Assembly (NCBI GenBank): GCA_964234715.1
Contig: OZ174275.1
Source of the DNA: Podarcis melisellensis
Taxonomy: Eukaryota
DNA length: 64,000 nucleotides
Reading direction: 5' to 3' (one strand)
Under the pieces are notes generated by a model. That model did not search any database. It saw only the letters and a program-made list of their open reading frames with translations, and had not been told where the DNA came from. A program made the translations under genes and the position numbers. Positions 19,846-55,833 of the stretch are shown here, one piece after another. Each line of letters starts with the position of its first letter. The first letter of the stretch is position 1.

Positions 19846-20372
19846 TAGAGGCATAGAGCAAAGTGAACATGATGTGACTGGAGAATACCTGAAGTGGAAA
19901 CTTGTGCTTTAAGAAAGACTGTACCAGCTGAAGAAAATAAAGTGTGAACCACTTTTCTTTTTTAGTGACCCCACAATGCTGAAGTGCTGAGATTGCTGGC
20001 GAACAATAGCAGAAAGGGTTTTACGCTCATGTCTTGCTTGTGAGCTTCCCATAAGAATCTTGCTGGCCACTGGGGGAAACAGGATGCTAGCCTAGTTAGG
20101 CTTTGATCAGATCCCACAGAGTGGCTCTTATGAGATATACCTCCCTAATCGGAAAGGTGTGACTCAAGTTGCAATTGCATACCCATTTACCTAGAAGTAA
20201 GGCACACTGGACTGTGGGTGTTTTACTTCTCAGTAGGCATGCATAGGATTGCCCTGGTTGCCACCAGAACTGATCAAGAGATTTGAGGCCCTTTCACTTG
20301 TTGCAGAGATAAGGAGCACAGCAAATGTATGCTGTAATATCCAAGGTAGATACATCATAAAATGTGGGTGGA

Positions 20373-21510
20373 GGGGGGCCACTAGGGGGCGCATTGGAAG
20401 ATGGCCGACAATACCATCTCTCCGACCCACACGGGGTAATTAAGAGGCTGTTATGGGAGTAGGCAGCCTCCCTTGTTGCCCCAAGGAAATGGGGAACACT
20501 TGCCTGCTGTGCCCATAAATCACCCCCTAATTCAAAAGAAGGGGGTGAGGGCCCTAGGCAGAATGCCCCCGTGTGGACCTCGGCTCTCCTGGGCGCTGTC
20601 TCTGATCGCGCACTAGTTGCAGCAATTTGGAATAATTAATTACAAAAGAAGCAAATGCACATATTTCAAGTGAATAAGGGGAGTGGTCTGCTAATTTAAG
20701 TGACCTCTGCGAAAGAAGACGACGGGTTGGAGAAACAGGAATATTTTACAATGAAGATACACCAAAGGCGGGGTATGTTGACAACAGGGCTGAATGGGGG
20801 GGGGGACCTTTTTTACTTTTCTTCTATGTGATTTACAAGAACCCCTCCTCATTAGAACCGTCGGTTGAACTGACCCAAGCGGGATGATTAAGATCTGTGT
20901 GGAGATAAACTTTAACCAAAAGTATGCTTTATGGAGACCGAGAAGCAATAAGAGCTTTTGGGAATGGCGCAGCAATTAATTCGGAGTTGCCATCTTGCCA
21001 AAGGATTTATAGCCGGGAAGAAGAACGGATTTGTTTTCAGACTGCATTCCTAGTGAATCTCCTCAGAGGTTTTGAGAAAGGAGGCAGATTGGTGAAGATT
21101 AATGACGCTAAGACTGTTTTGATGTATGGAAGTGATGTTATATGGAAAACGTCTGGATATGGCTACTGAATTAAAAAAAATAATATCCACGCAGGATTAC
21201 AAACTGTTCTAACCAGCTTGCGGAGACTATCAGAGGTCACAAAGAGAAAGAAAAAATATATGAAAATAACAACAAGAGATGTGGAAAAATAATAAGAAAG
21301 GACTGGATAGTACTGTGAACAACATAAGGTTAGATTTGTGGACATTAAAACAGCAGTAAGAAGAAGTTGATTGGATCCGTTCGGAACTTGAAATATGGGT
21401 ACCCCCAACAAAAATTTAAAATTCGGCTGTGTAATTTGGAATTTATGTAATTTGGTTTGATTTGATGTGATTGGTCGGTTAATAAAAATTATTCTTAAAA
21501 AAATAAAAAT
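20373..21510 (+). mobile_element. Full-length ~1.1 kb non-coding L1-dependent retroposon, copy A
   Basis: 5' G-run plus GGAAGATGGCCG; AATAAA at 21481-21486 followed by an A-rich tail; TSD (AT)AAAATGTGGGTGGA at 20357-20372 and 21509-21524; end-to-end homology with 53311-54415; no long ORF. Confidence 0.85.
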
Positions 21511-22034
21511 AAAATGTGGGTGGAGAAAACTGTAACTGGCTCAGTTCCCTGGAGTGTGTATGTACTACATACCTGTCATATACTTGTGATCATTAAAATA
21601 TGCTACTCTCACTAAGATGTAGCATATAGAATAGGCCTAAGACTAAATAGCAAGCATTTCTGAATTCACTCATAGGCTTTAAGATAGCAAGCTTTCTTCA
21701 GTTTCTATTTGCTCTTAAGATATTATGTTAGAGTATCTCAGGAGTAGCCTCTCTATAACAAAGGTTGGTTATGGTCTCACCAAGGATATTTGAACTGATG
21801 ATCATGTAGCAACTTCTTTGTCTTAGGCTTTTCTAATTACTTTAAACTTCTAACAGTTAACTTGGGGAGGGACAATTATCCAGATAATGTTCAAAATAGA
21901 CTTCTACCACCATTCAGAAGAAATATTTACACAAACTGATGCTTTTACACTGATACTATATGTAGTTCACATCAAAGGACATCTCATAAATATCCTGACT
22001 GATAAGACAGGATATTTCTATAATACTCTTGGCC

Positions 22035-32788: not shown

Positions 32789-32892
32789 TAGTTTCAAACA
32801 CAGGTATTCATATAGACATTAAAAGTAAATATGCTATTTGTTTAAATAGCCACACTTCATGTAAAATCACTTGTGTACAAACATGGTCTTAC

Positions 32893-33069
32893 TTGGATTT
32901 TGCCTCTTGCAATAATGAAGGGTCATCTGTAGCCAAATAGACTCGTTTTTTGTCAATATGCATTCTGCGGGAGAGAAGTTGGAAACGTTCTTCAACATGT
33001 ACCATATATTCTTCAATGGGATGAAATGCTGCTTCAGTTCCCACTTTGTCTGTTCTTCGGACATGAATA
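32893..33069 (-). CDS. FUT8: FUT8 coding exon (177 bp) with GDP-fucose-binding motif I ([12 protein letters not shown]) and motif II (VYLATDD)
   Basis: Alpha-1,6-fucosyltransferase motifs intact; AG at 33071-33070 and GTAAG at 32892. Confidence 0.98.
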
Positions 33070-33737
33070 CTGCAATGAAAAGCAAACACAAATTTCTCTT
33101 GACCAGGATTTGTTTGTTTTTTGTTCGTTTGTCCTTTACTTTCATTAGAACGGACTGTAAAATAAATTGGCATTAGAATATATATTATTTTCAGAACAAA
33201 TTTGTCAAAAACTACAGAGCAAGGGCTTGGATTAGTTACATGGCTGAGGGTGGGTGGAGAGAAGTAAAGATTACTAGTCAGTCCTTGAAACCAAATAGAT
33301 GGTTGGAGGCCAAATGCCAATATATTTTACACATGTCACAGTAGAATCACAGCATTATGATTTTGCAAATACCTTCAAGGTACTAATGCGCCACACGGTC
33401 AGCATGGCCTCCTTTTACACACATATCCAGTAGGTTTAAATATAGTCACCAGCTCACAGAATTTAACCTTGTGTGAAAAGACGTTGCATGTATCATAAAT
33501 GTGTATTTGTCAAGAGGGTTCTTAAGGCATTTTTATCACTTCTCTACAGTTTCATCCATACTAAAACATGCCTGCTGAACTAAAACACTGGAGTAAAATT
33601 AATTTTCTCCAGGGTTTCTGGAAAGGAAGCTGTCTTTTATTGGGGTAGTACTATAGTTACTTACTGTTGCTAATTTGATTGTGATTCTGTGGTTTCAATT
33701 ATGGCTTTAATTGTGCTCTGTCTTGTTTTAACTAACT

Positions 33738-53099: not shown

Positions 53100-54464
53100 C
53101 AGTGGAACCTCATGTTACGTACCGTCCTCCTTGCAAACGCTTCGGGTAACAAGTTCTGCTAAACCGGAAGTAGGTCTCCTGGTAACAAATTTTGCCTCGG
53201 GGTGCAAGCAGAAGTCGCATGCCGGAGGCGCACGTGCAGCGGAAGACGCCATTAGCGAAAGTGCGCCTCATGTTAAAAACGGTTTCAGGATAAGAACGGA
53301 CCTCCAGAACGGGGGGCCGCTAGGGGCGCATTGGAAGATGGCCGACAATACCATCTCTCTGTCTCACGCGAGGTAATTAAGAGGCTGATATGGGAGTATG
53401 CAGCCTCCCTTGTTACCCCAAGGGAATGGGGAACACTGCCTCACCTGCGGTTGCCACAAATCACCCCCGGATTCGAAAGAAGGGGGCGAGGGCACTAGGC
53501 TCACAACCCTCGCGTGGGACGGCTCTCCCTGACGCTGTCTCTGATCGCGTGCCTGGTTGCAGGAGCTCAAAATAAACAATTAGCGAGAAGCTAATTAGCG
53601 AGTTAAGACTGCTAATTGAAGTGACCTCAGTGAAGTCGAGCAACGGGCTGGATTCAACAATATAGCAAAAAGAAGATATATCGAAGATGTTGGTATGTCG
53701 GAACAGGACTGAAGGGGGGGACTTTTCTTTTTTATCTTATGTGAGTACCTAACAATCCCCCCCCCCCCAAGAAGAATCGTTGCAATTACTGATTACAAGC
53801 AGGATGATTAAGAACTGTGTGGAAATAAATTACTACTCAAAGACATGGCTTGTGGAATATTTGGAAAGGAATGAAAGGTCTTTGTGATGCAGTTATAAAA
53901 AGAGACTTGTTGGGGCAGGCCTGGCTACAGGAATCGAGGGGGAGGAGACCAAGGTTTGTTATTATATCGGACTGTGAGTTTGATCTGGCAGAACCCCCTA
54001 AGAGAGACTGACTGGCCTGTGAAGATTAATGGACAAACTTTAAGAATGTTTTGTACGGAAGTGCGCAAATGGTCTCTGTTTGTCTCAATATGGCTCTTGG
54101 AAGAACAGAAAATCCACACAGGATATAACAACGTTTGTTTTCAACCCGCTTGTGGAGACTACCAGAGGTCACAAAGAAAGGAATATATGACAACAACAAC
54201 AAGAAGATGAGGAAAATAATAAAGAGAAGATTGATTAGAACTGTGAATACTATTTGGACAGAAATTGTGAACATTAAAGCAGCAGCAAGAGAGATGTTTG
54301 AATCCCTTTCTGAGCTCGAAGCATGGGTACCCCCAACAAAAATTTTAAAAATTGCCTGTGTAATTTGGATTTAATGTGATTTGATTGGTTTGTTAATAAA
54401 AATGTTTTTTTAAAAAAGAACGGACCTCCAGAACAAATTAAGCTCGTAACTGGAGGTACCACTG
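53100..54464. mobile_element. Tigger/pogo-like MITE (about 240 bp) split by the 1.1 kb retroposon
   Basis: TA|CAGTGGAACCTC ... GAGGTACCACTG|TA; halves at 53100-53310 and 54435-54464. Confidence 0.88.
53311..54415 (+). mobile_element. Full-length ~1.1 kb non-coding L1-dependent retroposon, copy B (antisense in a FUT8 intron)
   Basis: Same 5' end as copy A; AATAAA at 54395-54400 and short A tail; perfect 19-bp TSD AAGAACGGACCTCCAGAAC (53292-53310, 54416-54434). Confidence 0.88.
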
Positions 54465-55584: not shown

Positions 55585-55833
55585 CAGTGGTACCTCGGGT
55601 TAATTTGTTCTAGAGGCCCGTTCTTAACCTGAAAATGTTCTTTACCTGAAGCACCACTTTAGCTAATGGGGCCTCCAACTGCTGCCACACCATGATTTCT
55701 GTTCTGATCCTGAAGCAAAGTTCTTAACCCGAGGTACTATTTCTGGGTTAGCAGAGTCTGTAACCTGAAGCATATGTAACCTGTAACCTGAAGCGTATGT
55801 AACCTGAAGCCTATGTAACTCAAGGTACCACTG
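55585..55833. mobile_element. Tigger/pogo-like MITE with duplicated left junction
   Basis: TA|CAGTGGTACCTCGGGTTA ... TAACTCAAGGTACCACTG|TA; internal TAACCTGAAGC repeats. Confidence 0.88.

Follow-up and report, generated by a model that had tools for sequence, protein, structure and literature searches.

The first ~210 bases of a ~1.1 kb retroposon, present twice in the 64-kb stretch of DNA that we analysed (hereafter the window), are predicted to form a stable, four-armed RNA fold whose pairings are kept in two very different copies. On balance, and without great confidence, we favour the view that this region is a selected, cis-acting structured 5' RNA module of an L1-dependent, pol II-type, non-coding and polyadenylated squamate retroposon.

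Results

Two full copies of the element lie on the plus strand of the window. Copy A extends from 20374 to 21508, limits set by an empty-site joint and by alignment to copy B, and copy B, defined by alignment to copy A, extends from 53311 to 54415. Copy A is flanked by target-site duplications identical at 17 of 17 positions (20357-20373 on the left, 21509-21525 on the right) and copy B by perfect duplications of 18-19 nt (53292-53310 and 54416-54434). These lengths, 17-19 nt around both full copies, fall within the ~7-20 nt expected of an L1-type retroposon. At the 3' end, both copies carry an AATAAA signal and then a short A-rich tail, which in copy A follow a conserved block on the plus strand (together 21392-21508). 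We searched the 64-kb window with blastn and nhmmer and recovered copies A and B only; the window also held no standalone copy of the head and no L1 for comparison. No coding signal was detected in copies A and B: their ORFs reach at most 81-94 aa, none is common to both and none matches Pfam. With no ORF that is recognisable or common to both copies, the element is non-coding. The two ORFs in the head of copy B (71 aa and 55 aa) found no candidates among 5.8 billion predicted proteins.

Judging from an exon ORF at 32889-33320 (minus strand) that matches the FUT8 catalytic domain (Pfam FUT8_N_cat PF19745, E 3e-25), the window lies within FUT8, the alpha-1,6-fucosyltransferase gene, on the minus strand. 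Copies A and B are both antisense to FUT8 and sit in its non-coding part, probably in introns. Their two insertion sites are loosely T-rich on the bottom strand. The target of copy B (53283-53310 and 54416-54440) recurs inverted at 55601-55634 (minus strand), ~1.2 kb downstream, with 89-92% identity over 25-28 nt, and copy B thus seems to have inserted into another repeat.

Does the 5' end of the transcript adopt a defined structure? Folded alone, the domain of copy A (162 nt) has a minimum free energy (MFE) of -80.5 kcal/mol (z -5.24), a value that 0 of 200 dinucleotide shuffles equalled, and the domain of copy B (174 nt) one of -74.6 kcal/mol (z -4.0), equalled by 1 of 200. The independent MFE folds of the two copies arrive at the same four-way junction, composed of a closing helix (P1), two hairpins (P2 and P3) and one long arm, and P1 and the hairpins are retained in both the MFE and the centroid structures of the full-length transcripts of both copies. 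A search of Rfam with the fold matched 0 of 4227 families, both at the gathering score and at E values up to 10; the only candidates, mir-26 (17 bits where the cutoff is 57), HOTAIR_3 and CRISPR repeats, were rejected as chance matches.

In copy A, the 5' strand of P1 (20422-20436, plus strand), recovered in the MFE, full-length and consensus folds, pairs with a 3' strand at 20567-20583 that carries a 3-nt bulge (20577-79): CCACACGGGG (20427-20436) pairs with CCCCGTGTGG (20567-20576), and CCGA (20422-25) extends the helix by pairing with TCGG (20580-83). A preliminary description of this DNA had paired 53359-53373 of copy B with 53508-53522, and we recovered this helix as 15 continuous base pairs, two of them U-G; every strand that it quoted from copies A and B lies where it had placed it. 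P1 is therefore 10-15 bp long across the copies. The two hairpins already described, P2 (20444-20470, GAGGCUG/CAGCCUC plus an apical extension) and P3 (20474-20498, UGUU.CCCCA paired with UGGGGAACA), appear on the plus strand in the MFE folds of both copies; the stem of P3 is invariant between them and so carries no covariation information. The long arm (20503-20558, plus strand) is built from P4 (20503-06/20555-58), P4b (20509-14/20549-52), P5 (20520-27/20541-48) and a tip (20531-33/20538-40), and is conserved least at its base, where a 4-nt indel follows 20498.

The corresponding fold of copy B spans 53359-53522 on the plus strand, with P1 at 53359-73/53508-22, P2 at 53381-53407, P3 at 53411-35 and the arm at 53444-99, tipped by a C-GAAA-G tetraloop (53474-79). 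The GNRA loop proposed earlier for this copy is borne out in the family, where GAAA is the majority state (G at 20534 in ~94% of contig depth among the matches listed). Two other stems said to be kept in both copies needed correction. The one given as GCCT/AGGC is really CCUG/UAGG, which both copies form, the outer G-C pair of copy A being an A.C mismatch in copy B; likewise, the TCACCCCC stem is present in both, but its A-U pair is A.C in copy B.

Which strand is paired? Energy does not decide between the two, the antisense strand being as stable as the sense strand (z -5.5 and -3.8). Two C-G/U-G changes in P1 become A.C mismatches on the antisense strand, and the antisense P1 of copy B is interrupted. 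These changes are thus tolerated on the sense strand only.

We then compared the two copies, which differ by 29 substitutions in the domain, pair by pair. An RNAalifold consensus of copies A and B contains 48-52 pairs: 41-44 are invariant and carry no information on pairing, 3-4 have changed on both sides, one or two on one side (C-G to U-G), and none is broken. Three double-sided changes had been claimed for P1. Those at 20431/20572 (A-U to G-C, a CpG transition on both sides) and 20434/20569 (G-C to A-U) hold; the one at 20425/20580 (A-U to U-A) exists only under one placement of a 2-nt indel. Another, from U-G to A-U at 20451/20462 in P2, had been missed. Two of the double changes are non-CpG, one of these two being a transversion on either side. 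No stretch of the head changes faster than P1 (8 substitutions in 30 nt against 17% over the whole domain), yet P1 is fully paired.

To what extent could such a pattern arise by chance? The structure conservation index (SCI) of the A/B consensus is 0.84, and its energy was reached in 0 of 500 column shuffles (z -7.8) and in 0 of 500 re-dealings of the differences with either copy held fixed (z -3.6 and -5.3; p <0.002). When the structure of copy B was imposed on copy A, 6 of 56 pairs were broken or gapped, as compared with ~15 expected (p <1e-4) when each B-to-A difference may fall on any column with the same base, and 4 double changes were found where 0.8 were expected (p 0.005). The test of the structure of copy A on copy B was weaker and only marginal (11 of 60 pairs broken, p ~0.04); the MFE fold of copy A contains extra pairs at the poorly conserved base of the long arm. 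In a family-wise simulation of the whole domain, in which CpG and non-CpG substitutions were as many as observed and any helix of at least 8 bp kept in both sequences was considered, at least two double changes in a kept helix occurred in 1.1% of trials (0.011) and at least three in 0.05% (0.0005). This simulation, with its observed number of CpG transitions, replaced as the main null an extreme one in which nearly all CpGs decay; there, at least two double changes arose in 24% of trials and at least three in 10%, showing that CpG-rich P1 arms could mimic compensation. A control on the pair count gave 73/500, a figure to be read against the eight outcomes that two rows allow and the resulting floor of 1/8. 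In our reading, the pattern is real and structure-preserving, resting on three or four events. The earlier proposal of a selected RNA fold is supported in part, in that the substitutions separating the two copies are placed so that pairs stay; the kept pairings suggest that the fold matters to the element, two copies being too few for proof.

Copies A and B are 69% identical overall (31% different), and this identity is unevenly spread: it is 74-90% in the first ~250 nt, 45-70% with many indels in the middle and 88% in the 3' block at 21392-21440. The stretch directly 3' of the fold (20584-20612, plus strand) is invariant. This conservation of the head is the pattern reported for Anolis L1, whose families keep their first 100-120 bp despite strong divergence from one another (PMC5381506). 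The diverged middle contains homopolymer G/C tracts, G10 in copy A (20797-20806) and G7 and C12 in copy B (53706-53712 and 53758-53769), which recall the poly-C/poly-T motifs reported in lizard L1 3'UTRs (PMC5381506).

The order of features from the 5' end is a G-run, a CTCF-like box, a YY1-type box and then the folded domain (20422-20583). The CTCF-like box, CCACTAGGGGGCGC, was read from the sequence of copy A at 20379-20392 (plus strand); its counterpart in copy B (53317-53329) has lost one G and carries CCGC. Within the family, a C at 20383, which converts the box to CCACCAGGGGGCGC, accounts for 24-31% of contig depth among the matches listed. We take CCACTAGGGGGCGC to be a near-match, and CCACCAGGGGGCGC a perfect match, to the CTCF core consensus, and a high-copy, active retroposon of this kind could be a spreader of CTCF sites in a squamate genome. 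The YY1-type box AAGATGGCC (20398-20406, plus strand) is invariant between the copies and matches, at 8 of 9 positions, CAAGATGGC, the YY1 site found at the start of almost every mammalian L1 (Boissinot and Sookdeo 2016, PMC5381506). Two further pairings are predicted around these boxes, both between sequences that are invariant in the two copies: (i) GGCUCUCC, just after P1 (20584-91), can pair with the 5' G-run (20374-81); and (ii) the YY1 box, as GGAAGAUGG, can pair with CCAUCU.CUC nine bases downstream (20396-20422), an inverted second ATGG core.

How old are the two copies? In sequencing run X4, position 20356 is followed at once by 21509 in one contig, whose 249 flank bases show no difference and whose two sides have 17 letters in common at the joint; this joint skips 1152 nt, the sum of copy A (1135) and its 17-nt duplication. 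An empty site was also found in run X3, which bears another organism label, with 6 flank differences. Because the empty site in X4 has identical flanks, copy A is a recent and probably polymorphic insertion. With perfect duplications around both copies and an empty site for copy A, yet 31% divergence between them, copies A and B are young insertions from long-separated source lineages that were both recently active, a situation typical of lizard L1 families (PMC5381506). Since both copies are young, their differences arose in functioning elements and not in decaying copies, and the uneven conservation and the pair-preserving changes therefore reflect constraints on activity.

For the family at large, we aligned Logan contigs (~100 nt) and RNA reads to the element at 80% likeness. 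Summed contig depth is 60,000-780,000 over the element and 84-97 in its single-copy flanks, an excess of roughly 700-9000x; contig depth is not equal to copy number, but the family is clearly highly repeated, with roughly a thousand or more copies. Depth is about 5-10x that of the fold and body in two places, namely the bin with the YY1 head and the P1 5' strand (20391-20437) and the 3' tail (21378-21518); from 21392 to 21508 it is 5-8x that of the middle. The two deeper parts are either shared with other families, perhaps L1s or other retroposons, or simply the best conserved. A 23-mer from the YY1 head, searched with and without the majority variant, had no exact match in metagenomes, GTDB genomes or viral contigs. 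Among the matches listed, the family majority has the copy B state at 20434 (A), 20534 (G) and 20593 (A), and the CTGCC insertion after 20498, again the copy B state, is present in half or more of the RNA reads; thus, copy A carries several private changes. In these data the two strands of P1 cannot be linked, and the majority A at 20434 is neutral for covariation, B-like reads being clipped in the divergent 3' strand of P1.

The element is also represented in RNA. Read depth reaches ~50-60 in the head (run X23) and 5-10 in the body, and the 3' block is covered as well. In two RNA-seq runs, pairs with the first mate on the minus strand were in 2-7 fold excess, which corresponds to sense RNA under the usual stranded protocol, the libraries being uncalibrated and the flanks without coverage. 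We observed no pile-up of RNA-read starts at the first base of the element, and many RNA reads continue upstream into unrelated DNA; part of the element RNA is thus read-through, and much of it may be. The element contains internal T6 runs (20811-20816 in copy A, near 53731 in copy B) and, given these runs, the AATAAA signal and the YY1-type start, it looks like a pol II rather than a pol III unit.

Discussion

What we observe is a fold whose pairs are kept through double-sided changes, in a family that is abundant, recently active and transcribed. How might this fold serve the element? Most likely, the family borrows the L1 machinery for its mobility. The L1-type YY1 box, and perhaps the CTCF box, would act as DNA-level signals, the YY1 box probably as the pol II start signal. 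Downstream, ~165 nt of the sense transcript would fold into the four-way junction, with the long arm tipped by its GNRA loop. Selection on the RNA of active source elements would keep this fold, which may act in cis and improve the transcript as a template, whether by stabilising it, by helping RNP assembly or by giving it access to the L1 reverse transcriptase. That the head docks on ribosomes to capture L1 ORF2p as Alu does, a proposal made by analogy, seems to us quite improbable; the head has no 7SL/SRP similarity, and the transcript looks like one of pol II.

Could the head instead be conserved at the DNA level, serving as an internal pol II promoter or transcription-factor platform like the L1 5'UTR, with the fold a by-product of palindromic sites? 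The CTCF-like and YY1-type boxes just upstream of the fold, the invariant sequence of hairpins P3, P4 and P5, and the greater depth (5-10x) of head and tail, as shared modules would show, agree with this idea, as does the conservation of the first 100-120 bp across Anolis L1 families (PMC5381506). It leaves unexplained why P1, the least conserved stretch, is fully paired via double-sided changes and why the substitutions preserve the structure as a set, and we hold it to be rather unlikely. Chance and history together would dispense with selection on pairing: a head recently exchanged between lineages would have higher identity, and its few compensations would be due to luck and the decay of CpGs, or else to template switches from one arm of an inverted repeat to the other. 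The events are indeed only 3-4, one of them CpG-type, the extreme CpG null gives p values of 0.1-0.24 and the A-on-B test is marginal. However, the realistic null gives p values of only 0.011 and, for three events, 0.0005, 0 of 500 re-dealt sets of differences reach the observed energy, two double changes are non-CpG with one a transversion on both sides, and the arms lie 130 nt apart, all of which makes this account unlikely.

Two further readings concern the origin and the chemistry of the fold. SINE heads have arisen by capture of host non-coding RNA, and if an undescribed host RNA, for instance a small nuclear or small cytoplasmic one, was joined to an L1-type tail, the element would have inherited its fold; the compact, stable, multi-helix domain with its GNRA loop has the size of a small RNA. 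We nonetheless regard such a capture as a poor candidate, still less probable than chance and history, as 0 of 4227 Rfam families match at E up to 10, the domain begins ~50 nt inside the element, behind the YY1-type start, and the window contains no standalone copy. A self-cleaving ribozyme could set the 5' end of the element by trimming co-transcripts, a role that HDV-like ribozymes have in R2, RTE and L1Tc, and such processing would be useful where many RNA reads enter from unrelated upstream DNA. This reading we consider highly improbable: Rfam yielded no ribozyme match (not an absolute argument, covariance models being weak on pseudoknots), the structure, which begins ~50 nt inside the element, is a simple nested four-way junction that lacks the double pseudoknot of HDV, and no pile-up of read starts was seen. 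We therefore retain a selected, cis-acting 5' RNA module as the preferred reading.

Elements of this kind are known, namely non-autonomous L1 passengers with a structured head. What is new is that one element unites a YY1-type start with a four-way junction, a non-coding body of 1.1 kb and a poly(A) signal, its head being unrelated to the RNA families described in Rfam; the comparison covered Rfam, and the family may already have a name in a repeat library such as Repbase or Dfam. In a bolder version, which we put forward tentatively and think more doubtful than the module itself, the fold would belong to a class of cis-acting RNA not described so far: a 'retrotransposition module' in the shape of a four-way junction, which arose de novo in a non-coding L1 parasite of squamates transcribed by pol II and which recruits a host or L1 protein to obtain reverse transcriptase in trans, as the 7SL-derived fold does for Alu; the same element would be spreading a near-perfect CTCF site to thousands of loci.

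How non-coding retroposons that have neither a 7SL nor a tRNA head compete for the L1 machinery is poorly understood, and SVA is the main studied case. A lizard family that is active and abundant, and whose compact 5' fold seems to be under selection, would offer a second, independent system, in which helix-breaking and helix-restoring changes could be tied to mobility. The family would also be a natural case of a retroposon that carries CTCF and YY1 sites through a reptile genome. Should the fold prove incidental, the element would still be a useful marker of young insertion polymorphism, and otherwise ordinary.

Comparison with known systems

At the extreme 5' end, the element resembles the heads of L1 5'UTRs, in Anolis and in mammals with their YY1 start, where a G-run is likewise followed by AAGATGGC. 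To our knowledge, no conserved RNA fold has been described for the 5' termini of Anolis L1. The head is also conserved across otherwise divergent families, as in Anolis L1 (PMC5381506), whose 5' consensus sequences (GACTTCCGGTG..ATGGCG and GGGNGCTGCGCATGC) match the head only loosely (PMC5381506).

Like Alu and B1, which derive from 7SL, the element is a non-coding, probably L1-dependent retroposon with a compact, conserved multi-helix RNA at its 5' end, an A-rich 3' end and target-site duplications. Unlike them, it is 1.1 kb and not 0.3 kb long, and its head is a four-way junction and not the Y-shaped Alu fold. No Rfam family, at E up to 10, gave the head a similarity to 7SL/SRP; this lack of 7SL homology, the internal T6 runs and the AATAAA signal with its A tail argue against a SINE with a 7SL/Alu domain.

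With SVA and HAL1 (half-L1), the element shares polyadenylation and a length of ~1-2 kb and, probably, pol II transcription and non-autonomous mobilisation by L1. The 5' domains of SVA promote trans-mobilisation. In contrast to SVA and HAL1, the element lacks ORF1 and has neither hexamer nor VNTR nor SINE-R parts, and its head consists of one structured domain preceded by a YY1 box. Finally, in stringent LINE/SINE pairs such as UnaL2/UnaSINE1, 3' stem-loops are kept because propagation needs them. Those systems resemble the proposed module in having an RNA structure that acts in cis within a retroposon; their structures are 3' and are read by the reverse transcriptase, whereas the fold described here is at the 5' end.
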